From the IMG/VR virus record IMGVR_UViG_3300003322_000571, positions 286,090 through 350,089 of that record: DNA of 64,000 nucleotides; one strand, given 5' to 3'. Below are positions 18,367 to 64,000 of this stretch, one piece after another. Position 1 is the first letter of the stretch; every line of letters starts with the position of its first letter. A model generated the notes under the pieces. It did no database searches, was not told where the DNA came from, and was given only the letters and a program-made list of their open reading frames with translations. The translations under genes were made by a program, and so were the position numbers.

Positions 18367-18449
18367 TGGTTCTCCTTTGCTCTGTACGAAACTATTTACG
18401 CTGGAGAAATAGCAGTGATCTTTACCCGTATACCCAGGGACCGGAAATG

Positions 18450-18473
18450 AAGGAAGGCGCCGAAGCGCCTTCC
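18450..18473 (-). terminator. GC-rich hairpin ending tmRNA transcript
   Basis: AGGAAGGCGC-TTCG-GCGCCTTCCT. Confidence 0.7.
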
Positions 18474-18795
18474 TATGATACTGTTGTTATCGGGGTATCA
18501 TGCCCTCAGTCAAGCATTAAGCTGCGAGACGGAAGTTACCTTCATTTGCATTTAGGTTGTTTTCTTGAGTTACGGTCTTCGCCACCGGCATGCGCCATCC
18601 ATCTCAGTAACTCTGTCGAAACCAGGGCAGGCCCATGACAGAAGATTCAACGCTACGTTACTTTTCGAGGGCCTAGGTTCCCTTTAACCGTTTCACGCAG
18701 CACTAAACCTTCTGTGGTGGACCTGGCGGGAATCGAACCCGCGTCCAAAATCCTTCAACATCAGTCGAATTACATGCTTCATCTGCTTGCGCAGA
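18450..18795 (-). ncRNA. ssrA: circularly permuted (two-piece) tmRNA; tag ANEGNFRLAA
   Basis: acceptor piece ...GACGCGGGTTCGATTCCCGCCAGGTCCACCA (ends 18715) precedes coding piece GGGCCTGCCCTGGTTTCGAC (starts 18634); 7-bp acceptor stem with G3-U; tag codons 18549-18517. Confidence 0.93.
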
Positions 18796-18827
18796 TACGT
18801 CTATTTAAGCATAGAACCCTAAAACTA

Positions 18828-23394: not shown

Positions 23395-24477
23395 TTAGTT
23401 GTCAACTTCGAATCCCGTGAGGCCCTCTTTCAAGCCGTTTGGAATAACCTTTTGCCCCATCATCCAGTGTTGGGTCGTTTGAATATGATTAGCTCGGACG
23501 TATTTGCCAACCATTGATTTGAACTGACTGTAGTGGAAAGGCTCGTCAACGCGTATGACGTAGCCTTCAATTTCGCCACCAGCAGCTTTTCGTTCTTTCT
23601 CGAGTTTGGCGTAGATACTTTCGATCTTTTGACGATCATATTCACCCCAGTAAATGACTGGGCACGGTTTAATACCCAGCAACTGGAACCATTCCAGTTG
23701 TTGAGTCCAATCAAGCATCACATTCTTATCGTTCCATACGGCGAATCCGTATGCGTACGTTTCCAAATCTTCATACTTGATCGAATGCTTTGCGTACACG
23801 TTTTCAACGTTAATACGCCATCCTTCGGGAATATCTCCTTGAATCCGGCCGTGCAAGGCACGAACCCAGTTTCGAGAAGGATGCCCTCCAGATGTTACAC
23901 TACGTGCATGAATATGATCATTATACATCGTAGTGTTTTCACCATCAAGTTTCTCCATCACAACGACGCGTTTACCGTTGAAGACGTTAACATCAGGCAT
24001 CATCCGGTCGTCACTGTGCATACCAGGACTCCACGGCAGATGATACGTCCGTGGGTACTTGACATGTTGGACGAACAGTCCAAGAACACCGCCCTTGTCG
24101 AGGATCTTTTGAACACTTTCGTCTTCAAACAGGTCACCACGGAGACGAGTTCCGTTATCCATGATAATATTACCCCACTTGTCATACACTTGATCCTCGT
24201 ACAGATGAGGTGGCAAGACGGGTTTGGTAATACCAAGTAGTGCTCTGATATTTTCAACAGAGAACGTGTCATGAGTTGTCATTTCACATTCAAGATGATG
24301 TTCCTCGCAGACGGAAGCACCATTGTTCAAATAGTAGCCGCCGTCAGGGAAGAGTCGTCGTTCGAGAATGTGATGTGCATCGACTGCAGGTTTATCGCAG
24401 AAGATGCAAGTGTGTTTGTCACGTGCGAACACACCTTCGCGGAATTGATCCCGCGTAAGGAGTTTTGTTCCATCCAT
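23395..24477 (-). CDS. HNH-like domain fused to ATP-dependent RNA ligase (Rnl2-like)
   Basis: CIFC..DAHHILERR..NGASVCEEHH, then KYPRTYHLPWSPG, EKLDGEN, EGYVIR, KYVR. Confidence 0.8.
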   Translation of the reverse strand: MDGTKLLTRDQFREGVFARDKHTCIFCDKPAVDAHHILERRLFPDGGYYLNNGASVCEEHHLECEMTTHDTFSVENIRALLGITKPVLPPHLYEDQVYDKWGNIIMDNGTRLRGDLFEDESVQKILDKGGVLGLFVQHVKYPRTYHLPWSPGMHSDDRMMPDVNVFNGKRVVVMEKLDGENTTMYNDHIHARSVTSGGHPSRNWVRALHGRIQGDIPEGWRINVENVYAKHSIKYEDLETYAYGFAVWNDKNVMLDWTQQLEWFQLLGIKPCPVIYWGEYDRQKIESIYAKLEKERKAAGGEIEGYVIRVDEPFHYSQFKSMVGKYVRANHIQTTQHWMMGQKVIPNGLKEGLTGFEVDN

Positions 24478-24478
24478 T

Positions 24479-24691
24479 TTAGTAATCTCTATAGTCGTGC
24501 TCAGACGTACAGTTATTCTGTGCCTTAGCGTCGTTATATGCACAACTCCAAATTGAAGCAACTAGTACGCCGAGTATTACGAATGGCATGCTGTCTGACG
24601 CATAGACGCATACAGCAACGATCGCACCAATTATAATAGCCAGTACAATTAGATAAACTGTGGCTTGGACAGCAGCTTTTTTATCCATCAC
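24479..24691 (-). CDS. small two-TM membrane protein
   Basis: hydrophobic 70 aa ORF. Confidence 0.55.
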   Translation of the reverse strand: MMDKKAAVQATVYLIVLAIIIGAIVAVCVYASDSMPFVILGVLVASIWSCAYNDAKAQNNCTSEHDYRDY

Positions 24692-43487: not shown

Positions 43488-44425
43488 ATCGATTCAAACA
43501 ACGAAGTTAATTCAGCGATGTTTGATCAAAGCCAAGCTGTGAAGGGACTGGTTCGATTCCAGGTGTGAGTAACAGAAGCTCTATCAAGGACGGAGCGTCA
43601 TTGTTTGGTACGTTCTTTACAATTCAAGATTTGGGGCATAGCCCGGATAACTCCAGTGATGGAGCCAAAGCCTTAATGCTACATTATGGCGCCAGAAATG
43701 GTCAATCTATGCAAGCTCAGTTCTCTCCAGAAATGGAGGCTTCGTCGGGTTATCTGGCGGAGATAACTAGGAAATGAGTGTTGTGGAAAGAACACGAGGT
43801 CAAGTGCCACGCAAGTGGGAACACAACTGAGTGGAAAGCTGGGTGGTACCGGCTTCACAACAAACCAAACTCATCAGTAGGTAAGAACAAGAGTAGTGTC
43901 AATGTCCAAGCCGGCAAGCGAGGGCTATGATGCAGTTTGAGAGGTTAGTGGTGTGTGAAACATCATTGGTCTTGAAAAACAGTTGAGTAAGCGGCAGCTG
44001 AAAGACATGGAGGTGTGTTGTATTTTGGTGGTCAAAAGCCATCGAAGCAACTGGACGCACACATCTTCGTAGCGATTTCCGGTTAAAAACCGGGTAATTC
44101 ACGGTTTATGAATATCTTTAACGCAAAAGTTGCGTCCGGTGTTGTGTGAAAGTGGCTTAATTCTGTGGCAGCAATGTAACACAGACGTCTGAAGCTCGCA
44201 AGGCAGAGGATGTTGAAAGTGAGTCGCACGTTTGGCTAGGCATAGTCGAGCGGTAGACAAACTTCGAATAGCACAACGCGACGAGGTAACCGCCAACCTC
44301 TAAATAAGGCAGTCATGCAAGGTACTCTCATGAGAGAGTGGATAAGTGTAGAACCAATGGTGTAGCAGCCAAAGGATAATGACACAAAAGTCTTGTACCA
44401 ACCGATGTAATCTCAGTCGTTTGAC
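43488..44425 (+). ncRNA. large (~940 nt) ornate noncoding RNA (GOLLD/ROOL-like class candidate)
   Basis: no credible ORF between promoter and terminator; many short hairpins (GCAA, GAAA and ATGA loops) and a T-arm at 43548-43563. Confidence 0.7.
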
Positions 44426-46778: not shown

Positions 46779-46855
46779 GCTCTCTTAGCTCAATTGGTTA
46801 GAGCGGCGGTCTCTAAAACCGACGGCTACGGGTTCGAATCCCGTAGAGGGCACCA
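46779..46855 (+). tRNA. amber suppressor tRNA (anticodon CTA)
   Basis: full cloverleaf, loop CT-CTA-AA, encoded ACCA. Confidence 0.88.
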
Positions 46856-50756: not shown

Positions 50757-51884
50757 ATGGAACTGTACAATCAACTGATGGCGCTGACGCAAGATGGCGA
50801 TGCTTTCTACTTCCAGGACTTCGAACTGGATCGTGTGAAGTATCGTATCTTCAACTACCGTCTCGCTTCGTACAGCGACTTCCTGAAGCCAGGCGCTCTG
50901 GAGTGCCGTGGCATCATGTTTGATATCACCGACGGTATTGCTGAACTTGTTGCACGTCCGATGCAGAAGTTCTTCAATCTGAACGAAAATCCGATGACGA
51001 TGAACCTCGATCTGTCGCAAGTCGACACGGTTGAGCTGAAGGCTGACGGTTCGTTGATGTCAACGTTCATTCATTGGACTGATTCTGGTCCGATGCTTCG
51101 TCTCAAGTCGAAGGGTTCGCTGTTCTCTGAACAAGCAATCGACTCGCTGAAGTGGCTCACTGACCACGATCCGGAACTGAAGCATCATCTGTTCATGGTG
51201 ACGCTCGATGGCTACACGGTCAATCTCGAGTGGTGCGCTCCGTTCAACCGGATCGTGATTGGTTATGAAAAGCCGCACCTGAAAATCCTGAACGTTCGCA
51301 AGATGGAAACCGGCGAATACATGCCGCGTGTTGTGATCGAAGATCGTTTCCGTAACCCGGATTGGATCATCGACCGCGTCCGTACAGACGGCCTCAACAC
51401 GGCTGATTTCGTCAAGTCGATCCCTGCGCTGCAAGACGACATTGAAGGTTACGTGTGCCGTATCGGTGACCTGTGGTTCAAGGTCAAGACCGAGAAGTAC
51501 ATGTCGCTTCACCACGCGAAGGATTCTGTCAACAATCCACGTCGTCTGTTTGAAGCAATCATCGACGAAGGAATCGATGACCTTCGCTCAATGTTTGCAC
51601 AAGATGCACTCGCGATGAAGTTGATCGACGAGATGCAAGAGAAGGTTACACGGATGTACAACAGTGTTGTTCGTCAAGTGGAAGACTACTACAGTGCGAA
51701 CAAGGCGAAGGAACGCAAGGATTATGCGATCGGTGCACAGACGCTGTCGATTGACGGTGTCAAGCTGATGTCACTCGCGATGAACCTGTACATCGGCCGT
51801 GATCCTGGTTTCAAGGACTTCCTCAAGGGGAAGTACAAGGAACTCGGCTTCAAAGATACGTCGGTTGACAAGAAAGAAGACTGA
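50757..51884 (+). CDS. RNA ligase 1 (T4 Rnl1-like)
   Basis: IFNYRLASY, LECRG, PMQKFFNLNE, KADGSL, EGYV, WFKVKT. Confidence 0.92.
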   Translation: MELYNQLMALTQDGDAFYFQDFELDRVKYRIFNYRLASYSDFLKPGALECRGIMFDITDGIAELVARPMQKFFNLNENPMTMNLDLSQVDTVELKADGSLMSTFIHWTDSGPMLRLKSKGSLFSEQAIDSLKWLTDHDPELKHHLFMVTLDGYTVNLEWCAPFNRIVIGYEKPHLKILNVRKMETGEYMPRVVIEDRFRNPDWIIDRVRTDGLNTADFVKSIPALQDDIEGYVCRIGDLWFKVKTEKYMSLHHAKDSVNNPRRLFEAIIDEGIDDLRSMFAQDALAMKLIDEMQEKVTRMYNSVVRQVEDYYSANKAKERKDYAIGAQTLSIDGVKLMSLAMNLYIGRDPGFKDFLKGKYKELGFKDTSVDKKED

Positions 51885-53085: not shown

Positions 53086-53694
53086 ATGCAAATGAAACAA
53101 AATCGTATCAACCAACGTGGCGGTGCTGGTATCGTCGCCCTGATCGTTCTGGCGATCGTCCTCGTGATCGGTGGCGGTATCTTCGCTCTGTACGTGTCGA
53201 ACGCGAACTACGGCAACCGGACGGAAGTCCAGATCCAAGGTATCTGGGAAAACAACCAGAACATCCTTGGTCAATACACGCTGAAGGTGCAAGAAATTGC
53301 ATCGGTGCCGGAGATGTACAAGAATGACCTGAAGGAAGTGATGACTTCCGTCATGCAGGCTCGTCAAGGTCCAGATGGCAGCAAAGCAGCGTTCCAGTTC
53401 TTCAAGGAACACAACATCAACATTGACACGGCGATGTACACGAAGATCCAACAAGTGATCGAAGCCGGTCGTAACGACTTCCAAACGAATCAGACGCGCC
53501 TGATCGACACGAAGAAGGTGTACCGTGAGCAGCTCGGTTCGATCCCGAAGGGTTGGTTCCTGTCGATGGCTGGCTACCCGAAGATCAAGATCGGTTATCC
53601 GAACATCAACGATGATGACTACAAGCCGGTCGTTGCTGAAGACACCCGTGACGTGTTCAAGAGCGGCGTCCAGAAGCCGGTCAAGCTGCGCTAA
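53086..53694 (+). CDS. LemA-like membrane-anchored protein
   Basis: TM anchor, helical bundle, GRNDF..NQ.RL.D..Y...P.G.F..AGY. Confidence 0.65.
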   Translation: MQMKQNRINQRGGAGIVALIVLAIVLVIGGGIFALYVSNANYGNRTEVQIQGIWENNQNILGQYTLKVQEIASVPEMYKNDLKEVMTSVMQARQGPDGSKAAFQFFKEHNINIDTAMYTKIQQVIEAGRNDFQTNQTRLIDTKKVYREQLGSIPKGWFLSMAGYPKIKIGYPNINDDDYKPVVAEDTRDVFKSGVQKPVKLR

Positions 53695-55009: not shown

Positions 55010-55408
55010 ATGAAACTACGTTCGATTTTGGAAGCAAAGAAGCTGTTGACGCAGGACGAGTTGGAAGCGATCAACAAGCAAGCTTTGAAAGATGACATCA
55101 GAAACAATGAAATCGCCTTGCAAAAGGCGATTGAAGATGGTGATGACGAATCTGCCGCTGAATATCGTGAAATTCTCAAGGCTTGCCGTGCTGAATTGAA
55201 CGAAGACATGGGCCAAACAGCTGAAGCATCACAAGCATATGCTGCCCACATGGGTGCTATTAGGCAAATGTTGACTGAATTGGGGAAAAGTCTTGACAAT
55301 CATGCTAAACGTCAAGCACTCGATAAAGGCAACTGGGGTTACGCAGGTGACCTTGAGTCTGTCGCAGAGAAATTGAAGGATGTTCTTGAAGGTTTCAGCC
55401 AATTCTAA
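55010..55408 (+). CDS. hypothetical protein
   Basis: GGAG RBS; MKLRSILE N-terminus. Confidence 0.7.
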   Translation: MKLRSILEAKKLLTQDELEAINKQALKDDIRNNEIALQKAIEDGDDESAAEYREILKACRAELNEDMGQTAEASQAYAAHMGAIRQMLTELGKSLDNHAKRQALDKGNWGYAGDLESVAEKLKDVLEGFSQF

Positions 55409-55419
55409 GTAAACGGTTG

Positions 55420-55449
55420 TTGACTTTTTAGGTAACTCTCATATATACT
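55420..55449 (+). promoter_or_regulatory. sigma70-type promoter of tRNA array leader
   Basis: TTGACT-18-TATACT; CATAAATA also at 55519. Confidence 0.7.
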
Positions 55450-55568
55450 TCACGTAACAGTTCAAACACGTCGTCAAAAGCGTGTTTGAACCGATAGGTA
55501 AATTCTGTTGTAACCCTTCATAAATAGAAGTACAGTTACAACAACTTAACGAAACAAGGTTTTCACAA

Positions 55569-55706
55569 ATGCAACACTTCGGTCAACATCACAGCGAGCA
55601 GCTTAGCCTTCAGTGGCAAGGCATGAGCTCCCTGCGTTCCGAATTGTGTGACTATCCTCGATTTGATGAACCTACGACCGCCCTTTGTGGAGGACTTGCA
55701 GCATAA
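55569..55706 (+). CDS. putative 45-aa leader peptide (MQHFGQHHSEQ...CGGLAA)
   Basis: AAGG RBS, open frame to TAA, overlaps antiterminator strand. Confidence 0.6.
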   Translation: MQHFGQHHSEQLSLQWQGMSSLRSELCDYPRFDEPTTALCGGLAA

Positions 55707-55766
55707 TACGCGCAAGAACTGAAACCAAACACAAAGGGCTTAGAGAAATCTAGGCCCTTTCTTTTT
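55680..55766 (+). promoter_or_regulatory. putative attenuator (antiterminator/terminator)
   Basis: GCCCTTTGTG (55680-89) pairs with CACAAAGGGC (55730-39), which is also the 5' arm of terminator AGGGCTTAGA-GAAA-TCTAGGCCCT-TTCTTTTT. Confidence 0.7.
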
Positions 55767-55841
55767 GGTCAAGTTGAAAAACAAAACCTTAATTGTTCTT
55801 TTTACAATTTGGATAAAACCGATGAATCTAGTGTTCATCGG

Positions 55842-55917
55842 GGTGACGTTAGTGTAGTGGTTCGCATTACTGTCTGTGAAACAGTAGGAACGGGTTCAAT
55901 CCCCGTACGTCACCCCA
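55842..55917 (+). tRNA. tRNA-His(GTG) with encoded G-1, C73, CCA
   Basis: cloverleaf; loop CTGTGAA. Confidence 0.92.
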
Positions 55918-55934
55918 ATGAACATTAGAATTAT

Positions 55935-56026
55935 GGAGGCATGGATGAGTGGTTTATATCGCTTCCCTGCTAAGGAAGAGCTCGGCGAAAGTCGGGCCGT
56001 GGGTTCGAATCCCACTGCCTCCTCCA
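55935..56026 (+). tRNA. tRNA-Ser(GCT)
   Basis: long variable arm, CCA. Confidence 0.92.
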
Positions 56027-56039
56027 ATGTGTGTAGTGT

Positions 56040-56111
56040 CAGGGTAGAAGGCGTTTGGTAGCCACTTAGCTTTGGAAGCTTTGAGTCTCAGTTCGATTCT
56101 GAGTATCCTGA
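56040..56111 (+). tRNA. tRNA-Pro(TGG)
   Basis: C1-G72, A73; weak anticodon stem; no CCA. Confidence 0.7.
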
Positions 56112-56129
56112 CAGTGCACATATTACAAT

Positions 56130-56203
56130 AGGGGAATGGTGTAGCGGTAACACAACTGGCTTTGACCCAGTCATCCCAGGTTCGAATCCTGGTTCCCTTG
56201 CCA
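56130..56203 (+). tRNA. tRNA-Gln(TTG)
   Basis: cloverleaf, CCA. Confidence 0.9.
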
Positions 56204-56213
56204 ACTGATTTCT

Positions 56214-56285
56214 AGGGAAGTAGTGTAGCGGCTATCACCTCTGGTTCTGACCCAGACAACACAGGTTCGAGTCCTGTCTTCCCTG
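56214..56285 (+). tRNA. tRNA-Gln(CTG)
   Basis: cloverleaf, no CCA. Confidence 0.88.
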
Positions 56286-56365
56286 CAGAGAAACATGCTT
56301 GCATGTAACGACCGAGTCAACGACATGAACTGTGCAGACGTAGTAGTGTTCTTGATTCATTCCTT

Positions 56366-56436
56366 ACTCACCGCCGTCGGAACGGTTCTGTGTCTACGAA
56401 ACACGGATTTGGAGGTTCGAATCCTCTCGGTGGGTC
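56366..56436 (+). tRNA. tRNA-Arg(ACG), atypical D arm
   Basis: loop CTACGAA, T arm; D arm GCCGT-CGGA-ACGGT. Confidence 0.6.
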
Positions 56437-56440
56437 AAAT

Positions 56441-56514
56441 GTCTCCATAGCTCAGCGGATTAGAGTAACACGCTACGAACGTGTTGGTCGGGGGTTCGAA
56501 TCCCTCTGGAGGCT
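56441..56514 (+). tRNA. tRNA-Arg(ACG)
   Basis: canonical cloverleaf. Confidence 0.92.
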
Positions 56515-56573
56515 CAAAAGAGTTGATATGTAAAAGGTTACAAAGTAAAGTTTACATATCAGTTTCCAAATCT

Positions 56574-56646
56574 GGTGCACTCGGCTCTCTGGGAGACCAC
56601 TTCACTGTCTATGAAGGCTAGACGGGTTCGATTCCCGTGTGCATCG
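56574..56646 (+). tRNA. tRNA-Asp(GTC)
   Basis: loop CTGTCTA, T arm. Confidence 0.75.
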
Positions 56647-56652
56647 CAAATG

Positions 56653-56829
56653 TGTGTTTAAGACTGTCGCACGCCAAAAGGCACAGTGGGTTAAGTCTTA
56701 CTTCATGTCTTTACTTGTTGGCGCAAGTATAACATGTTGTCCATTAGTACAGTGGTAGTACGTCGCCTATAACGGCGAAGACGCGGGTTCGATTCCCGTA
56801 TGGAATTTTTGACGACAGCCTTAAACACA
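56653..56829 (+). ncRNA. end-clamped RNA containing a tRNA-like domain (56740-56804)
   Basis: 17-bp terminal helix (1 mismatch); D, anticodon-like (6-nt loop) and T arms inside. Confidence 0.6.
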
Positions 56830-56830
56830 T

Positions 56831-56875
56831 GGTTCGTTAGCATAGTCTGGCTTAATGCGCTTGCCTGTCACGCAG
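56831..56875 (+). pseudogene. 5' fragment of tRNA-Asp(GTC) truncated by HNH cassette
   Basis: acceptor 5' strand, D arm, CTGTCAC loop; no T arm or 3' strand. Confidence 0.7.
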
Positions 56876-56913
56876 TTCGAAGGTGACAGTCATAAATATC
56901 GTCAGAGGTGTTT

Positions 56914-57330
56914 ATGGAAACAAAAGTGTGTTCGGCTTGTAAGGTTAACAAATCGTTGAGTGAGTACAACAAGTACAAGCGATCAAAGGATGGGTTAGAT
57001 TATCGTTGCAAATTGTGTCAGCGCAATTCAAACAAGAGTTGGGTTGAAAACAATTGGGAGCGTAAGCTAGCACAGCAAACTGATCGACGTTCTCAACTAC
57101 TGACACAGTTGAGAGAGTTCAAAAGAACTGCTGGTTGTAGATGCTGTCCTGAAACCGAGCCGGTGTGCTTGGAACTGCATCACCTTGATCCGAATGAGAA
57201 GGAAATTGATCCTTCAAGTATGGTAAGTCAAGGTTGGAGCTGGGAACGCATGAAGAGTGAAATTGATAAGTGTGTAGTCTTGTGTAGTAACTGTCACAAG
57301 AAAGTACATGCGGGATTGTTGGAAATTTAA
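56914..57330 (+). mobile_element. free-standing HNH homing endonuclease in tRNA array
   Basis: CSAC..CKLC, CRCC..LELHHLDP..KCVVLCSNCHKKVH; CATAAATA at 56891, AGAGG RBS. Confidence 0.85.
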
Positions 57331-57332
57331 TT

Positions 57333-57407
57333 GGTCTCAAGGTGTTCATGGACGCATACGGCACTGTCACTGCTGAGGAGGGGGATCGTTACCCCCTGGG
57401 ACCGCCA
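57333..57407 (+). tRNA. tRNA-Asp(GTC)
   Basis: cloverleaf, variant T loop ATCGTTA, CCA. Confidence 0.85.
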
Positions 57408-57410
57408 AAT

Positions 57411-57583
57411 GTCTTCTTAGTGTAAAGGCTCAATGCTAGCTGTTGAGGTTACGGAAATGAAAGACTACAATTAATCGGTTGTGAATCGGCCGATAACTCA
57501 TCCGCGAGATTGTAGGAGATAATCAACGTGATGCACCTCATTCCCTAAGAATGAATGAGATGGTTCGATTCCATCAGAAGACA
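57411..57583 (+). ncRNA. tRNA-shaped RNA with ~109-nt structured D-loop insertion
   Basis: acceptor GTCTTCT/AGAAGAC, D stem GTGT/GCAC, anticodon arm TCATT-CCCTAAG-AATGA, T arm. Confidence 0.7.
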
Positions 57584-57588
57584 CAAAT

Positions 57589-57670
57589 GTAGTTGCTGTC
57601 CTCGGAGAGACTTGCTCGCGAATACGCTTGCTGAAAAGTACCTGAGTAGGTTCGAATCCTACCAACTACA
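57589..57670 (+). pseudogene. degenerate tRNA-like element
   Basis: acceptor GTAGTTG/CAACTAC and T arm intact; anticodon arm unpaired. Confidence 0.55.
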
Positions 57671-57671
57671 C

Positions 57672-57829
57672 TAATACGTCAATGCGGTATGAACGCAAGC
57701 CGGATGGGAGGTCTACATTCGGTGTCAGACGCTGTCGAGAGAAAGTAGACGTTGACCTCGAAGCGCCCTCGGGGGCTGAGTCAGAGAGTTGGTGCAACAG
57801 GCTGCAATCTGCCAATCCAACACGTATTA
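57672..57829 (+). ncRNA. unassigned structured RNA
   Basis: TAATACGT/ACGTATTA closing helix with internal helices. Confidence 0.5.
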
Positions 57830-57834
57830 AATTT

Positions 57835-57916
57835 GGATCATTATACTCCTATGGACGGAGACCAGATTGTAATCCTGGTGCCTTTGGCTGGGTAGGTTCG
57901 ATTCCTACATGATCCA
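57835..57916 (+). tRNA. tRNA-Tyr(GTA)
   Basis: loop TTGTAAT, variable arm. Confidence 0.75.
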
Positions 57917-57926
57917 CTAAGATGTT

Positions 57927-58117
57927 ATATGTCGGCTCTTGAGACATCGCAACTCGTGAGAGATGCTATTAGCGTCGACATTAATTCCGGGACAACACGA
58001 TGGCGCGCTCAGTCATAACGTAAAACCGGAGCCTATCTGAGCAATAGGTAAAGTCTTCGATTGTACGGCAGGCTTCTATAATAGTGGCCAGGAACTCGAA
58101 GCCAAGAGCCGACATAT
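57927..58117 (+). ncRNA. unassigned ~190-nt RNA closed by a perfect 15-bp helix
   Basis: ATATGTCGGCTCTTG/CAAGAGCCGACATAT. Confidence 0.65.
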
Positions 58118-58124
58118 GACATCG

Positions 58125-58196
58125 GGGGAGGTCGTTTAGCGTTCAAGACACTGGCCACTAAAGCCAGCGACGATGGTTCGAATCCATCCCTCCCCA
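58125..58196 (+). tRNA. tRNA with CTA anticodon and non-canonical A33
   Basis: CTGGC-CACTAAA-GCCAG; full cloverleaf; no CCA. Confidence 0.65.
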
Positions 58197-58202
58197 CAAA
58201 TT

Positions 58203-58285
58203 GGATCGCGAGTGGCATTGGTGACTACAGCTGACTGTAAATCAGCCGCCTTCGGGCATACTAGGTTCGATTCCTAGGCGATCCA
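58203..58285 (+). tRNA. tRNA-Tyr(GTA)
   Basis: loop CTGTAAA, variable arm GCC-TTCG-GGC. Confidence 0.9.
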
Positions 58286-58419
58286 CAAAGTGATGGTCGG
58301 CGAGGTACGCTGTTCAGTCGATCATCGAAATTCCCTACAGGCGTACTGCAAAGGGATGCTTACCAAACTTGAGGCGGCGGAAGCACGACCTCGGAAACTA
58401 GAAGTAGTTTCCAACCTTT

Positions 58420-58503
58420 GTCCCGTGATGACTGCTGGTAACGGTCAGTAGCCTTTCAAGCTACCGCCTTTGTGCTGGGGTTCGATTCCCCCACGGGATA
58501 CCA
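58420..58503 (+). tRNA. tRNA-Glu(TTC) with enlarged variable region
   Basis: GTAGC-CTTTCAA-GCTAC, CCA. Confidence 0.75.
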
Positions 58504-58505
58504 AT

Positions 58506-58581
58506 GATGAGGTAGCTCAGAGAAAGAGTGCTGTCCCCGCAAGGGCAGAGGCCGGAGGTTAAAGTCCTTCTCTCATCTCCA
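58506..58581 (+). tRNA. tRNA-like, anticodon loop of 6 or 8 nt (identity unclear)
   Basis: acceptor, D arm, T loop TTAAAGT, CCA. Confidence 0.55.
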
Positions 58582-58582
58582 T

Positions 58583-58656
58583 GACGTGTTGGCCGATCGG
58601 TTAGGTGTGAAGCTGCAACCTTCACCAGGCAGGTTCGATTCCTGCACACGTCTCCA
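58583..58656 (+). tRNA. tRNA-Cys(GCA)
   Basis: U73, CCA, loop CTGCAAC. Confidence 0.92.
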
Positions 58657-58812
58657 AACTTGATTACGGAAAGTTTATCGTGAAGATGAAATGGAAAGTG
58701 CTGAAACGCATTAACAGCGGTAAATTGTTCGAGTATACGAGTTGGTGTTACGGTTCTGAATCAATCTGCTTCTGGAAGTGGGAGCTTGTGATTCATAACA
58801 GAAGGAAATAAC

Positions 58813-59037
58813 ATGAAGTTGGTTCTTGATCTAGATGATGATCAAATCAAAGCATTGATGGCATTGTCGGACACAACGGATCCAGCGGTTTTGACAAATG
58901 AAAGTTTGTCAATTTTGAAATGGATGATCAAGGAAACTATCAAAGGTCGCGCGATCGTATCGTGTGATTATGATGGTGGCGACTTGAAGCAGTTGAAAAC
59001 ACCTGTGCTGAATCGCACAAAGGCAAAGTTCAATTGA
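58813..59037 (+). CDS. hypothetical protein (RHH-like possible)
   Basis: AAGGA RBS, 74 aa. Confidence 0.6.
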   Translation: MKLVLDLDDDQIKALMALSDTTDPAVLTNESLSILKWMIKETIKGRAIVSCDYDGGDLKQLKTPVLNRTKAKFN

Positions 59038-59042
59038 ACAAT

Positions 59043-59114
59043 GCCCCCGTAGTTTAGTGGCTAGAACGACGCCCTTTCAAGGCGTAGAAGACGGATCGTA
59101 ACCGTTCGGGGGTA
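59043..59114 (+). tRNA. tRNA-Glu(TTC)
   Basis: cloverleaf, T loop ATCGTAA. Confidence 0.85.
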
Positions 59115-59120
59115 CATATT

Positions 59121-59192
59121 GGTAACGAGGCTGAATGGTTAAGCAGGAGTCTCATAAGCTCTGTGTCGTGGGTTCGATTCCCACTGTTACCA
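59121..59192 (+). tRNA. tRNA-Met/Ile2(CAT)
   Basis: loop CTCATAA. Confidence 0.85.
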
Positions 59193-59197
59193 CTAAT

Positions 59198-59270
59198 AGG
59201 TTGTTCGCGGGCCGCGGACTTGTAGTCTCCAAAACTCATAGGGACAGTTCGACTCTGTCACAGCCTGCCA
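59198..59270 (+). tRNA. tRNA-Trp(CCA)
   Basis: loop CTCCAAA, G73, CCA; short D arm. Confidence 0.75.
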
Positions 59271-59272
59271 TT

Positions 59273-59345
59273 CCCCTCCTAGCTAATCTGGTGAGAGCGA
59301 CCGTTTGAAACGCAGTAGAGACTGGTTCGATTCCAGTGGTGGGGA
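59273..59345 (+). tRNA. tRNA-Phe(GAA)
   Basis: loop TTGAAAC; mismatches in stems. Confidence 0.7.
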
Positions 59346-59348
59346 CAT

Positions 59349-59819
59349 ATGAATCCAAGATACAGTAAGCAACGTCGCGCAACCACGTGTGGACCAACTG
59401 CTGTGATCAATGCGATGAAGTGGAAGGATCCACGGATTTCGTACACAAAAATAATTGACAAGGTTGCGAAACAGTGTAAACAGCAGAAAGATGGAAGCAG
59501 TTACACTAATATTGCTTCAGCGTGCCGTGCTAACGGGTTCAAAGCGTTTATTCGCAGGTATCCATCGATTGATTTTATTCGCCAGCAATTGTTGAAAGGA
59601 AAGTCAATCATTTTGTTGTACAGACATCCAAAAGACTTTTGGCCTGAATATAACCATTTTGTATTCATTCCTGAGTACAATAAAGAGTTTACAGTAGTCA
59701 ACGGTCATGTGTATGACAACCTTGAAGAAGAACGAGAGACGGTTGTGATGTATGACGATCATACGTTCAACAATAGAATATCAAAGAGACAACGTCACGC
59801 TGTGATTGTGTTGTCGTAA
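59349..59819 (+). CDS. C39-like cysteine peptidase
   Basis: Q..TTCGPTAVINA, NHFV, N. Confidence 0.7.
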   Translation: MNPRYSKQRRATTCGPTAVINAMKWKDPRISYTKIIDKVAKQCKQQKDGSSYTNIASACRANGFKAFIRRYPSIDFIRQQLLKGKSIILLYRHPKDFWPEYNHFVFIPEYNKEFTVVNGHVYDNLEEERETVVMYDDHTFNNRISKRQRHAVIVLS

Positions 59820-59821
59820 CT

Positions 59822-59894
59822 GCCGCTTAAGCTAATCTGGTGAAAGCGCTAGTTTGAAACACTAGAGAGACAGGCTCGAAACCTGTAGGCGGCA
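59822..59894 (+). tRNA. tRNA-Phe(GAA)
   Basis: CTAGT-TTGAAAC-ACTAG. Confidence 0.85.
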
Positions 59895-59907
59895 CAAAGG
59901 AATAAGT

Positions 59908-60090
59908 ATGAACACATTACTTGCTTGGAGTCATTTTGCAATTGGCGACTTTTTCTGTCGTTTATTGTCCCTAAATGACGATAACGAAAAATGGGTGAAT
60001 ATGTTCTTCGGCTTGTATCAATATCATATGAGTCGGAGTGTTGAAATCCAAGATCAGTTTGGCTTAGCTGGACCTTGGGATCCTAAATAA
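59908..60090 (+). CDS. hypothetical protein
   Basis: AAGGA RBS, 60 aa. Confidence 0.5.
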   Translation: MNTLLAWSHFAIGDFFCRLLSLNDDNEKWVNMFFGLYQYHMSRSVEIQDQFGLAGPWDPK

Positions 60091-60108
60091 GGCAACGGAG
60101 GTTGTCTT

Positions 60109-60267
60109 ATGAAGATCAAAGAGCTAATTCGTGAGTTTGTCGAACAACGCAACGGTAAGTGGGTAGTGCTTGATCACACCAAGAAAAAGGTGTTGGGAAC
60201 GCATGATACCAAAGACGAAGCGGACAGGCAGCTTGCAGCTATTGAGATCAATAAGCACAAACACTAA
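60109..60267 (+). CDS. small hypothetical protein (MKIKELIREF...)
   Basis: GGAGG RBS, TAAATA at 60084; 52 aa. Confidence 0.6.
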   Translation: MKIKELIREFVEQRNGKWVVLDHTKKKVLGTHDTKDEADRQLAAIEINKHKH

Positions 60268-60347
60268 CCCTTCGTGGCAAATGTAAATTGGTACAGCTAC
60301 TACGTTCAGACCGTAGGCTTTTGTCGGTTCGAATCCGACCGAAGGGA
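60268..60347 (+). tRNA. tRNA-Leu(CAG)
   Basis: CTACG-TTCAGAC-CGTAG. Confidence 0.88.
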
Positions 60348-60352
60348 CAAAG

Positions 60353-60604
60353 ATGAGTAAGGCTTCAGAAATTGAGCGAACACTTCACTGTTTGATCGAC
60401 ACACTCGAAAAGCTAGATCCAAAAGGTGATCCACTCGCTTGTAATTATGCAAAGATGCTGATCGATAAGTCGCACGACTATATGCTCGATGTGATTGCAG
60501 ATTTGGATGATGAGACTGAAGAAGGTAAGCAAGTTGCTGTGGTGATTGATCGTTACCGTAAAACGATCATGTTGCTTGACTCTTACGACAAATGTGAAGT
60601 ATGA
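60353..60604 (+). CDS. hypothetical protein
   Basis: 83 aa. Confidence 0.55.
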   Translation: MSKASEIERTLHCLIDTLEKLDPKGDPLACNYAKMLIDKSHDYMLDVIADLDDETEEGKQVAVVIDRYRKTIMLLDSYDKCEV

Positions 60605-60849
60605 TTTACGTAGATAAGCCAACGTGGAAGAAACCAAACGGACGAAAGTATTTCGCTCATATGGTTGCTGACACTGTTGAAGAGTTACATCAGTTCGCTG
60701 AACTGATTGGTGTGAAGAAACATTTCTTCCATCGCGGTGATAAACCTCACTACGACATCAGTGTGGATCAGCATGCTGCGGCGATAGCAAACGGTGCTGT
60801 CGAAGTTAGTACCAAACAGATCGTTGCGGTAATAACGCAACGGAAGTAA
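60601..60849 (+). CDS. DUF4031-like protein
   Basis: IYVD, HMVADT.EELHQFA..IG, PHYDI. Confidence 0.75.
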   Translation: MIYVDKPTWKKPNGRKYFAHMVADTVEELHQFAELIGVKKHFFHRGDKPHYDISVDQHAAAIANGAVEVSTKQIVAVITQRK

Positions 60850-60932
60850 AGTCTAAAAAAGAAAACGTCATCCAGAACGATATCTGGCTGCTCGAACGGC
60901 AACGGTGAGAGCGTAAGGTGACAGTTGTACAA

Positions 60933-61006
60933 GCGGCCATGGTGTTGAAGGGTTAGCACGAGACCTTGCCAAGGTTTAGGTCCGAGTTCGAATCTCGGTG
61001 GCCGCT
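60933..61006 (+). tRNA. tRNA-Gly(GCC)
   Basis: AGACC-TTGCCAA-GGTTT, U73. Confidence 0.88.
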
Positions 61007-61310
61007 CAGACAGGTTCTCACCCGTTGCTGGGGAGGGTCGGTACGATGGATTGTTCTGCGATACGTACCAACAGACTTCGCGCATTCAAGAGTAAGCGAA
61101 CATGAGGAATGCTGGAACCTGACCAAGATCCCCCACACTTGGAAATGTGTTGACGCGTTCAGTCTATAAAACACTGAACTGGTTGAGACGGATAACCACT
61201 AACTGAAACCGTCTTCGTTTGAGTTTTAGTTCCATATTGGCGGTACGGAAGTCGCTGGTTATGCTGGTAGGTAAAGCTACAAGTTTGTGTAGGATGCACA
61301 GGCGGTCAAT

Positions 61311-61398
61311 GCGGAAGTGATGGAATTGGTAGTCTTGCCATGTTGAGCGCGTGGTGTCCGCTAAGGGCGTGTGGGTTCGAATCCCATCTTCCGCACCA
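61311..61398 (+). tRNA. tRNA-Leu(GAG)
   Basis: long variable arm, CCA. Confidence 0.85.
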
Positions 61399-61412
61399 AT
61401 TAGGAGATGCAA

Positions 61413-61577
61413 ATGGGCAGCAAGTACACTGTCAAGTCTTGGGGCCAACATAATGGACCTGAAGATGTATATTCTTGGAATCAAGAATGGGCGGGTAGGT
61501 CCTTGTGGCAAGCTCTGATCCAAACTTGGCGTGCAAAACGTCGCGGCTTTGGGTGTGTGGTTCTAGAGATTCGCTGA
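61413..61577 (+). CDS. small hypothetical protein
   Basis: AGGAG RBS, 54 aa. Confidence 0.5.
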   Translation: MGSKYTVKSWGQHNGPEDVYSWNQEWAGRSLWQALIQTWRAKRRGFGCVVLEIR

Positions 61578-61580
61578 GAT

Positions 61581-61757
61581 ATGAGAAGTACACCAGTACC
61601 AGCAGGTAACATTAAGCTCCGTGGTAAGAAAACACGGCCGCTGTCATGTATGTGTTGTGTTGCAGTGAACTTCAAAGACATGATTCGTGAGAAAGAAGCG
61701 GACCGTGAGATCAAAAACTTCAAGGAAGGGAAAGACGATGGGACCGACCGGATTTGA
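61581..61757 (+). CDS. small basic hypothetical protein (CMCC)
   Basis: 58 aa coupled ORF. Confidence 0.45.
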   Translation: MRSTPVPAGNIKLRGKKTRPLSCMCCVAVNFKDMIREKEADREIKNFKEGKDDGTDRI

Positions 61758-61949
61758 AGCTGAATACCTCGGTGAAGTTCAGTGGGATACTACAGCAAAA
61801 GTGTTCTTCTCGGTAGTTACCGTAATTACATTAACGTTGCTGGTAATTCTTCTTTTGACGTAAGATGCGACCGACAAACTTCACGATTTATACGTTGTTG
61901 ACAGTCTCAGTACTCCTCACACTGATAACAATTGTAGTTTAAACACCTT

Positions 61950-62033
61950 GCCCAGGTGGCGGAATTGGTAGACGCGTAACATTGAGGGTGTTATGTCCGA
62001 AAGGACGTGCAGGTTCGAGTCCTGTCTTGGGCA
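61950..62033 (+). tRNA. tRNA-Leu(GAG)
   Basis: canonical type II cloverleaf. Confidence 0.9.
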
Positions 62034-62120
62034 CAAACGCAAGTGCATGCTGGCTAAAACAGTAGCACAGAAACTGAGTGATGACGACATCAGTTGCAAG
62101 AGATGTGAGCTCTCTACAAT

Positions 62121-62201
62121 GCCCGAGTGGTGTAATGGTAGCCACAGGAGACTCAAAATCTCCCGCCTCACAGCGTGTCGGTTCGAATCCGACCTCGGGT
62201 A
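62121..62201 (+). tRNA. tRNA-Leu(CAA)
   Basis: GGAGA-CTCAAAA-TCTCC. Confidence 0.9.
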
Positions 62202-62355
62202 CAAAGTAACGGTTCAGTGTTAGCGCATTGGACATACCAGTCTGGCCAGACGGATGATATGTACGGCCGTACGTTGAGTCTTATTTGTGAATTGGTTCTT
62301 GCGTTCGAATCGCAGGTCACAATAGGTAACGTTACTAACATATTAGGAAAAGTAG

Positions 62356-62907
62356 ATGCGAGTTAAAATTGGTCCATATCTGACGTGGTGGGGTCCTTAC
62401 CAAATTGCAGATCTGCTCCAATACGTAGGCGTATCAGAAGATCGATGCCAGAAAATTGGTCGTTGGTTGTCTAATACTCGATTGAATGATCTGTGTCAAT
62501 GGATTTACGACAAGCGACAACGAACAATCAAGGTCAAGATTGATTATCACGATGTGTTTTCTGCTGATTACACACTTGCGTTGATCATTCTCCCAGTGTT
62601 GAAGCAGTACCGTGAAAAGTTAAACGGGTCACCGTGGACAGATGATCAAGATGTACCTGATCATCTGCGTTCAACAAACGCACCACCGTTCAACCCAGAA
62701 AATGGTGAAACAGACGAACTATTTCACCAGCGATGGGAATGGATGGTTGACGAAATGATCTGGGCGTTCGAACAGATCATTGACGATGATAATGATGCTC
62801 AATTTCATGTCAATGGTTACGATCACGAATCACACATGAAACATGAACAACGTATCAAGAATGGTACGACACTGTTCGGCAAATACTATCGTGGTATTTG
62901 GCTGTAA
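62356..62907 (+). CDS. conserved phage hypothetical protein
   Basis: 183 aa; W.W.VDEMIWAFE motif. Confidence 0.75.
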   Translation: MRVKIGPYLTWWGPYQIADLLQYVGVSEDRCQKIGRWLSNTRLNDLCQWIYDKRQRTIKVKIDYHDVFSADYTLALIILPVLKQYREKLNGSPWTDDQDVPDHLRSTNAPPFNPENGETDELFHQRWEWMVDEMIWAFEQIIDDDNDAQFHVNGYDHESHMKHEQRIKNGTTLFGKYYRGIWL

Positions 62908-62913
62908 CAAAAT

Positions 62914-62999
62914 GGAGAGGCAGGCCGTGATGTATGTACGGCACCAGCAGGAACAGCTGGCGTCTCTGACTAACGGTGGTTAAATTCCATCACTCTCCA
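62914..62999 (+). pseudogene. degenerate tRNA-like element
   Basis: acceptor, D arm, CCAGC-AGGAACA-GCTGG, T loop TTAAATT. Confidence 0.5.
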
Positions 63000-63042
63000 C
63001 TAAAACAATGAGATAAATAGTGTACACCAAGGAGCACTGTTT

Positions 63043-63378
63043 ATGTTGTTGTCGGAACTGTATCAAGAGCACAAGGGAAGTTCGTTCACCCATGATGGTG
63101 AAAAGTATGACCTTAATAAAGTGTTGAAGGCAGTTGATAAAGATCCTGAGGAAGAATTTGATGTCGATGAACTTAAATGGGTTCTCGATTATGATTCTCC
63201 TGACGATAAACGTGTACGCAAAGCAGACCTAACCACACCAATCTTGGTAACAAGATGGGAAGGAAAACTAGTTGCTATTGATGGTCTTCATCGCCTACAA
63301 AAGGCGGTCGACGAGGGTAGGAAGAAGTTGCCTGGTAAGATGGTTTCGAAGAAAGTATTGAACAGCGCAAAGAAATAA
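63043..63378 (+). CDS. ParB/Srx N-terminal-like protein
   Basis: PILV....LVAIDGLHRL. Confidence 0.7.
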   Translation: MLLSELYQEHKGSSFTHDGEKYDLNKVLKAVDKDPEEEFDVDELKWVLDYDSPDDKRVRKADLTTPILVTRWEGKLVAIDGLHRLQKAVDEGRKKLPGKMVSKKVLNSAKK

Positions 63379-63384
63379 TGAATT

Positions 63385-63464
63385 GTCCTCTTGGCTAGGG
63401 TAAATTGGTACAGCCACTACGCTCAAACCGTAGGCTCTTGCGGGTTCGAATCCCGCAGAGGACA
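63385..63464 (+). tRNA. tRNA-Leu(CAA)
   Basis: CTACG-CTCAAAC-CGTAG. Confidence 0.88.
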
Positions 63465-63477
63465 CAAAGGTTAAACA

Positions 63478-63717
63478 ATGGAAATCAAGATCATTACGCA
63501 TTTCCCGACAGACGACGAAGATTGTAACGGCGATTACTACGACGTTGAAGTTCAAATCGATGGTAAAGTTGTTGCTAGCTTCGGTGATTACTACCACGAC
63601 AAAGGTCAGGATAAGGCAGAGGCGTGGAAAGATGGGTACATTGCTGCAATGGAACAGCTTGCACCGACGACGCAGGTTACAGTTGATTACGATTCCGTTG
63701 CAGATCGAGACGATTGA
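63478..63717 (+). CDS. hypothetical acidic protein
   Basis: 79 aa. Confidence 0.6.
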   Translation: MEIKIITHFPTDDEDCNGDYYDVEVQIDGKVVASFGDYYHDKGQDKAEAWKDGYIAAMEQLAPTTQVTVDYDSVADRDD

Positions 63718-63724
63718 AATTAAT

Positions 63725-63811
63725 GGATAGTTGTTCGCTTGGAGCGTAACTACTTTGGAACAGTAGTCCACTTGTGAAAAGCAGGTGAGAGTTCGATTCT
63801 CTAACTATCCT
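63725..63811 (+). tRNA. tRNA-Ser(GGA)
   Basis: CTACT-TTGGAAC-AGTAG, long variable arm. Confidence 0.75.
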
Positions 63812-63936
63812 CATACATTGTTGCGTAGATAACAGTTACTTCTTTTATTTTGCTTATAAAAAGGACGGGGTTCGATTCCCTGTTTGGAAGCTGGGTGCCA
63901 CATGTGCACTGTTGTCGACTTCATCTCAATGTTATT

Positions 63937-64000
63937 CGGAGTGTAGCGCAGTCTGGCTAGCGCAACTGCTCTGGGAGCAGTGGGTCGGGGGTTCGAATCC
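63937..64000 (+). tRNA. tRNA-Pro(TGG), truncated by window edge
   Basis: CGGAGTG-TAGCGCAGTCTGGCTAGCGC, loop TCTGGGA. Confidence 0.8.

Follow-up and report, generated by a model that had tools for sequence, protein, structure and literature searches.

A predicted leader-ORF attenuator before the tRNA array of uncultured giant phages

How do phages that carry large tRNA arrays control their transcription? Why phages carry such arrays is actively debated (codon supply, replacement of degraded host tRNAs, or escape from tRNA-cleaving defences), and how the arrays are regulated is essentially undescribed. The question is raised by a 64,000-nt stretch of DNA (here, the window) that forms the last 64 kb of a 350-kb IMG/VR contig. 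An original prediction, made from the sequence alone, held that a translated leader peptide and an intrinsic terminator gate a whole tRNA array by the logic of his/trp attenuation. We examined the locus and its relatives computationally, and find that a short open reading frame, whose last codons can pair with the terminator that follows it, sits in front of the tRNA array in a family of uncultured large phages. Its conserved, co-varying design indicates that these phages adjust transcription of their tRNA genes according to how well ribosomes are translating.

The window belongs to an uncultured giant phage, as it encodes T4-type topoisomerase II, a helicase, a primase, ribonucleotide reductase, two RNA ligases, a GOLLD RNA and a tmRNA. 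The GOLLD RNA (44008-44419, + strand) is full length (207 bits, gathering score 150) and lies about 11 kb upstream of the tRNA array. The tmRNA (18448-18817, - strand) matches the beta_tmRNA model at 126 bits and also the permuted-tmRNA model at 112 bits, and ARAGORN gives its tag as ANEGNFRLAA. One ligase, of the T4 Rnl1 type (50757-51884, + strand), lies 4 kb upstream of the leader, and such a ligase is also next to the leader in a related locus (L012, 2-1120), while the second lies elsewhere in the window (23395-24561, - strand). T4 Rnl1 repairs tRNA cut by an anticodon nuclease, which fits a tRNA-damage theme. The features of the leader region are as follows.

55420-55449, + strand: P1, a sigma-70-like promoter, TTGACT-18-TATACT (10 of 12 positions match), 12 nt after the stop of the upstream gene.
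55460-55491, + strand: a perfect 11-bp hairpin (GTTCAAACACG / CGTGTTTGAAC) at the 5' end of P1 transcripts.
55508-55536, + strand: P2, a second promoter-like box, TTGTAA-17-TACAGT, with the conserved spacer CATAAATA.
55556-55559, + strand: a Shine-Dalgarno (SD)-like AAGG, 9 nt before the ATG.
55569-55706, + strand: the leader ORF, 45 codons plus TAA.
55602-55621, + strand: H1, a hairpin inside the ORF (codons 12-18; CUUAGCC / GGCAAGG).
55636-55671, + strand: H2, a hairpin inside the ORF (codons 23-35; GUUC.../...GAAC).
55680-55689, + strand: strand A, the 5' strand of the predicted antiterminator, inside codons 38-41.
55695-55716, + strand: H3, the inner hairpin of the antiterminator, with the stop codon (55704-55706) in its loop.
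55730-55739, + strand: strand A', the partner of A, overlapping the 5' arm of the terminator.
55733-55767, + strand: the predicted intrinsic terminator, a 12-bp stem (hairpin 55733-55760), GAAA loop and U-run (CTTTTT), -17.6 kcal/mol.
55798-55841, + strand: a spacer with the AU-rich conserved motif CTTTTTACAATTTGG (55798-55812), then a hairpin (55819-55841) abutting tRNA-His.
55843-64000, + strand: the tRNA array, beginning with tRNA-His(GTG), with about 30 tRNA genes and inserted ORFs, running to the end of the contig.

The observation behind the original prediction holds in every sequence detail. The ORF encodes exactly the predicted peptide, with 3 His, 5 Gln and 16 amino-acid types; GCCCTTTGTG at 55680-55689 is the exact complement of CACAAAGGGC at 55730-55739; the inner CTTGC/GCAAG pair lies at 55695-55699/55712-55716; and tRNA-His is followed by Ser, Pro, Gln and Gln. 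The pairing is more than chance, as the duplex between the ORF end and the terminator arm has an energy of -20.6 kcal/mol, against -10.5 +/- 2.4 for dinucleotide shuffles (0.4% of shuffles as good), and the whole 326-nt leader folds with z = -5.6. [quoted passage not shown]

Is this arrangement found in other phages? Conservation of the ORF and of the alternative pairing in related phages had been proposed in advance as a way to check the idea, and we searched for relatives. The 132-aa protein encoded immediately upstream has no relatives, an exact DNA search of IMG/VR returned only the source contig, and a first metagenome scan with back-translated peptide patterns found nothing. Instead, a structural protein about 2 kb upstream (53086-53691) led to a related contig, L004 (related loci are designated by L numbers), which has a 45-codon ORF with 38% identical residues, followed by a terminator and a tRNA array starting with tRNA-His. 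A word-indexed search found two more peptides, and a profile search of 1.84 billion representatives found about 20 more (E down to 1e-10 for new members), all 42-50 residues once N-terminal over-calls are trimmed, for a total of about 23 peptide clusters. The contigs of these, with two IMG/VR hits, gave 13 distinct loci. Scans of genome contigs and metagenome contigs for the A/A' pattern returned 120 stretches each, nearly all chance hairpins, of which HMM screening kept only one true member, the metagenome locus L222, bringing the number of loci to 14. No cultured-genome host was found in these scans, and the family is absent from 50,697 GenBank phage records (tblastn of two family peptides); megablast of 20 kb of the window against GenBank phages also gave no match.

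The 14 loci share one layout: one or two sigma-70-like promoters, an SD-like run, an ORF of 42-48 codons and an intrinsic terminator. A tRNA array follows in the 13 loci long enough to show it, L222 ending just after the terminator. tRNA-His is the first gene in 12 of those 13, while L024 has Glu then His. The P1 box, with the same spacing, is seen directly in L012, L015, L020, L021 and L035, partly in L022 (only the -10 half falls in the stretch examined), and as TTGACT-17-TATAAT in L026, but it is absent in the L004/L014 clade; our scan for the P1 motif elsewhere in the window used the wrong spacing, and so says nothing about whether it recurs. P2 aligns with TTGACA-17-TATACT of L004/L014 and with TTGACA/TTGTCA boxes in L012, L015, L020, L022, L026 and L035, making it the only promoter-like element shared by all clades. 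We considered a T4-type late promoter in its conserved CATAAATA spacer; TATAAATA is not enriched in the window (1 found, 0.6 expected), which leaves this reading undecided. The hairpin after P1 is conserved as a structure with a different sequence in each locus (L015, L020, L021, L022 and L035), and it may be a 5' stabiliser or an operator.

The alternative pairing is conserved and co-varies. Each of the 13 loci folded has a predicted terminator of -14 to -21 kcal/mol, with a GC stem, a GNRA loop (nearly always GAAA) and a U-run, starting 23-30 nt after the stop. Strand A pairs with the terminator's 5' arm and the bases just upstream of it, with duplex energies of -14.6 to -24.6 kcal/mol, and in 12 of 13 loci at most a 0.03 fraction of dinucleotide shuffles do as well. 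With A aligned by homology and partners taken from each locus's own minimum-energy fold, 137 of 140 cells of the 10-bp core are paired across the 14 loci. Four columns carry changes on both sides: C-G to U-A in L028 (GCU/AGC) and L018 (GCCUUCU/AGAAGGC), and U-A to C-G in L004 and L014 (CCCC/GGGG) and in L018. Two further changes are U-A to U-G, and L021 has a C.A mismatch in the stem. Four of five substitution events in A are compensated, and because A' must also pair with the terminator's 3' arm, these are three-way changes. The loci are related, however, so the covariation rests on about 4-5 independent events, and pair counts come from an RNAalifold consensus and our own pair table rather than from a formal structure-pair count, which was not run. 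In a swap test, cognate A/A' pairs average -18.7 kcal/mol and permuted partners -16.4, with one in 10,000 permutations doing as well (P about 1e-4; P = 0.0013 with eight non-redundant representatives). In addition, L020 keeps the nucleotides GCCCTTTGTGGAGG but reads them in a shifted frame (SPFVE instead of ALCGG), and L018 and L004 change Leu to Phe or Pro while keeping the pairing. The constraint on this segment is therefore on RNA, not on the peptide.

The geometry is also conserved. Transcripts ending just after A', before the terminator's 3' arm, fold into one long antiterminator stem-loop of -22 to -30 kcal/mol as the minimum-energy structure in 14 of 14 loci, which is more stable than the terminator alone. 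Inside it is a hairpin of unrelated sequence from locus to locus, with the stop codon in or next to the apical loop. Strand A lies 7-34 nt before the stop, and its end is 9-20 nt before the stop. In full-length folds, however, the terminator state is only marginally favoured or disfavoured. Measurements in E. coli show that a ribosome on a stop codon no longer blocks a terminator placed more than about 27 nt downstream (PMC4824070), so that the 23-30 nt seen here is about the minimum distance. In this view, a terminating ribosome would melt the whole antiterminator, yet leave A' and the terminator free to fold.

Several lines of evidence indicate that the ORF is maintained as coding. The frame is open in all 13 loci tabulated, while the other frames carry 0-7 stops; a purine-rich SD-like run precedes the ATG in 12 of the 13, being weak in L035; and of five or more independent indels, all those upstream of strand A are multiples of three. 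The stop is TAA or TGA and never TAG in the 14 leader ORFs, in a phage that carries two tRNAs with a CTA anticodon, the amber-suppressor type (46779-46855 and 58125-58197, + strand). TAG ends only 2 of 53 long ORFs in the window, but reading it as sense does not clearly extend genes. The peptide, however, is mostly a by-product. The blocks that make the family recognizable (LSQxWLG, VRSE...RFEP and ALCGG) coincide with H1, H2 and strand A, and entropy at third codon positions is only slightly higher than at positions 1 and 2 (1.06 against 0.82 and 0.91). H1 has one pair changed on both sides in six sequences, and a hairpin is predicted at this place in all 14 loci, with entirely different stems in L018 and L222. 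H2 is likewise predicted in all 14 loci (GUUCAGAGCG / CGCUUUGAAC type); it is no better than shuffles in the window itself (z about 0) and stronger in the relatives. The C-terminal LAA, which the original prediction took for a degron, is not conserved, as tails differ in nearly every member (GGLAA, DGDGIY, GETLA, VEVV, GGPGI and others); the ending is a coincidence of this window.

It is tempting to ask which amino acids the leader might sense. There are no conserved tandem control codons: only the window has two adjacent His codons, and family members have 0-3 scattered ones. His makes up about 14% of the ten N-terminal residues across 22 members, against 2% in the window's proteins, and Gln is also frequent there. 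In the window, 37 of 45 leader codons can be read by tRNAs of the visible array, against 56.5% of codons in phage genes (p = 2.5e-4), a trend that recurs in other loci, and both the leader and the 30-gene array lack Lys, Asn, Ile and Val. The trend disappears once amino-acid composition is controlled and only synonymous choice is scored (57 of 104 codons served, 52 expected), so codon-level matching to the array is not supported. We treat the match as a composition effect that may stem from the GC-rich hairpins, and as suggestive only.

Transcription of the array from a promoter downstream of the terminator had been named at the outset as a result that would count against the idea. No site matching at least 9 of 12 sigma-70 consensus positions lies between the terminator and the first tRNA in 12 of 13 loci, although phage-specific promoters fall outside such a search. 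The six closest loci (the window, L012, L015, L020, L021 and L035) share the AU-rich motif, with a TACAAT-like box 35 nt before tRNA-His, followed by a hairpin that ends 1-2 nt before the 5' end of tRNA-His and varies in sequence but keeps its structure. By inference, this could be an RNase E-type processing site, which would fit co-transcription, or a weak -10-only promoter that bypasses the terminator. A different element of about 100 nt (GGGCGGYGGTNAGGATGAA ... AGTAAAA), conserved but of unknown nature, lies between the terminator and the tRNAs, or just after tRNA-His, in L004 (4544), L020 (2905), L024 (516) and L026 (1090); it has no Rfam match and is absent from the window. The array itself is more than 8 kb long, with further promoter-like sites and inserted ORFs (for example at 56908-57330), including an HNH endonuclease, and control of the whole array, as first proposed, is unproven. 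The arrays of 24-30 tRNA genes in the window and in L036 (2421-10292) contain no Lys, Asn, Ile, Val or Thr tRNA; several genes (Arg, Asp, Tyr, Glu, Phe, Leu) are duplicated, and two tRNA-like genes have odd anticodon loops (56738-56807, 58506-58581).

Altogether, the best explanation is a two-state, ribosome-dependent transcription attenuator that sets how much transcription from the upstream promoter(s) continues into the tRNA array, a reading that we hold with moderate confidence. In this model, the RNA around the end of the ORF adopts one of two mutually exclusive folds, either the antiterminator, in which A pairs with A' around the inner hairpin, or the terminator, whose 5' arm is A'. Because A and A' are transcribed before the terminator's 3' arm, and their stem is at least as stable as the terminator, the default would be antitermination. 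The antiterminator would stay open only if a ribosome has translated into or through strand A and is at or near the stop codon when RNA polymerase reaches the U-run, so that A' is free, the terminator folds and transcription stops. If the ribosome is slow, stalled or absent, for example because charged tRNAs are short, the antiterminator would form and the tRNA genes would be transcribed. Because the products are tRNAs, this would make a negative feedback loop on translation capacity. The parts, their conservation, the covariation and the geometry are what our analysis demonstrates, while translation of the ORF, termination and readthrough, the polarity of the switch (which rests on a kinetic argument) and the physiological signal are inferred, as there are no expression data of any kind and the response of readthrough to leader translation was not measured. 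The original interpretation is thus partly supported: its core, a translated leader ORF whose 3' end forms an antiterminator competing with an intrinsic terminator, has strong comparative support, but the specific his/trp analogy, the degron and control of the whole array do not.

The main rival, which we consider unlikely, is a self-contained small gene with its own promoter, 45-aa functional protein and terminator, the tRNAs being transcribed from a separate promoter downstream and the A:A' stem being mere 3'-end structure. The peptide family is indeed recognizable by profile search, and the -10-like TACAAT in six loci and possible phage-specific promoters are in its favor. However, the conserved peptide blocks coincide with RNA hairpins, the C-terminal part tolerates a frameshift and amino-acid changes as long as pairing is kept, a strand that co-varies with a terminator arm has no role in a plain 3' end, the element is next to a tRNA array in each of the 13 loci long enough to show it, and no sigma-70-like promoter lies downstream in 12 of 13. 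Still less likely is an RNA-only switch, in which a ligand, protein or tRNA binds the leader (T-box-like or protein-mediated) and the ORF is incidental. The leader is unusually structured, with three or four conserved hairpins, most peptide conservation is explained by RNA, and tRNAs are the effectors of T-box switches. Against this are the coding constraints, with an SD-like run and an ATG at a fixed position and the stop codon keeping its place at the antiterminator apex even where the frame has shifted, and the lack of an Rfam 15 match to T-box, amino-acid leader or sRNA families (nothing near a gathering score in 55300-55900, even at E up to 10; only tRNAs in 12 related loci). The least likely is a reversed, pyrBI-like polarity, in which a ribosome at the stop blocks the terminator: although 23-30 nt is at the edge of the range where this is possible (efficiency varies between 17 and 27 nt; PMC4824070), it leaves the co-varying antiterminator without a role, and, as without a ribosome the antiterminator forms first and is more stable than the terminator, both conditions would give readthrough.

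Among described systems, the closest is the whiB7 uORF attenuator of mycobacteria (bioRxiv 10.1101/2023.06.02.543512), for which the two-state logic is experimentally established. There, efficient translation of a fairly long uORF of mixed composition lets a Rho-independent terminator form, stalling or start-codon loss gives readthrough, and single His or Trp codons suffice, so that it senses translation stress broadly without tandem control codons. There is no sequence relationship, and the element here is in a phage rather than a bacterium, regulates tRNAs that would feed back directly on the sensor rather than a transcription factor, has its stop codon in or next to the apical loop of the antiterminator, and has two conserved hairpins in the ORF. 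The leader-peptide attenuators of enterobacterial amino-acid operons (trpL, hisL, pheL, leuL, thrL; PMC3082878 for pheL) share a short translated leader ORF, an intrinsic terminator, an antiterminator that shares a strand with it, and ribosome position as the deciding factor. Here, however, there are no runs of one regulatory codon, and no 1:2 anti-antiterminator overlaps the antiterminator, as H2 ends about 8 nt before strand A and shares no bases with it. Absence of translation should therefore give readthrough, whereas it gives super-attenuation in trp, and the targets are tRNA genes rather than biosynthetic enzymes. T-box riboswitches also tie a terminator/antiterminator switch to tRNA status, but they bind uncharged tRNA directly and need no ORF. 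The nearest functional parallel for a tRNA array is the 26-gene trn operon of Anabaena PCC 7120, which is induced by translational stress, though through the ribbon-helix-helix repressor TrcR at the promoter; that paper's text mentions no leader ORF, attenuator or terminator (PMC10272220).

If the attenuator reading is correct, what would it mean for these phages? One tentative possibility is a translation-capacity homeostat, in which the phage measures, through a leader ORF built from the same amino-acid set as its tRNA array, whether the infected cell can still decode those codons, and raises transcription of its replacement tRNAs when host tRNAs are depleted or cut by anticodon-nuclease defences, the products then feeding back to shut the array down. 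That the phage senses cleavage of host tRNAs, as first proposed, is a reasonable inference, but nothing in our analysis tests it. Such a homeostat would be the first attenuator whose regulated products are the very molecules that read the sensor. Full-text literature searches found no report of a leader-ORF attenuator in front of a phage tRNA array; what is new is the place (phages) and the class of target (tRNA genes) of a mode of regulation already known from bacteria. A conserved translation-sensing switch directly upstream of the array would mean that these tRNAs are made on demand rather than constitutively, would point to translation stress as the signal, and would provide a compact, testable part of about 200 nt that works with ordinary bacterial polymerase and ribosomes. 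On this reading, it also extends ribosome-mediated attenuation to non-coding RNA genes and to viruses.
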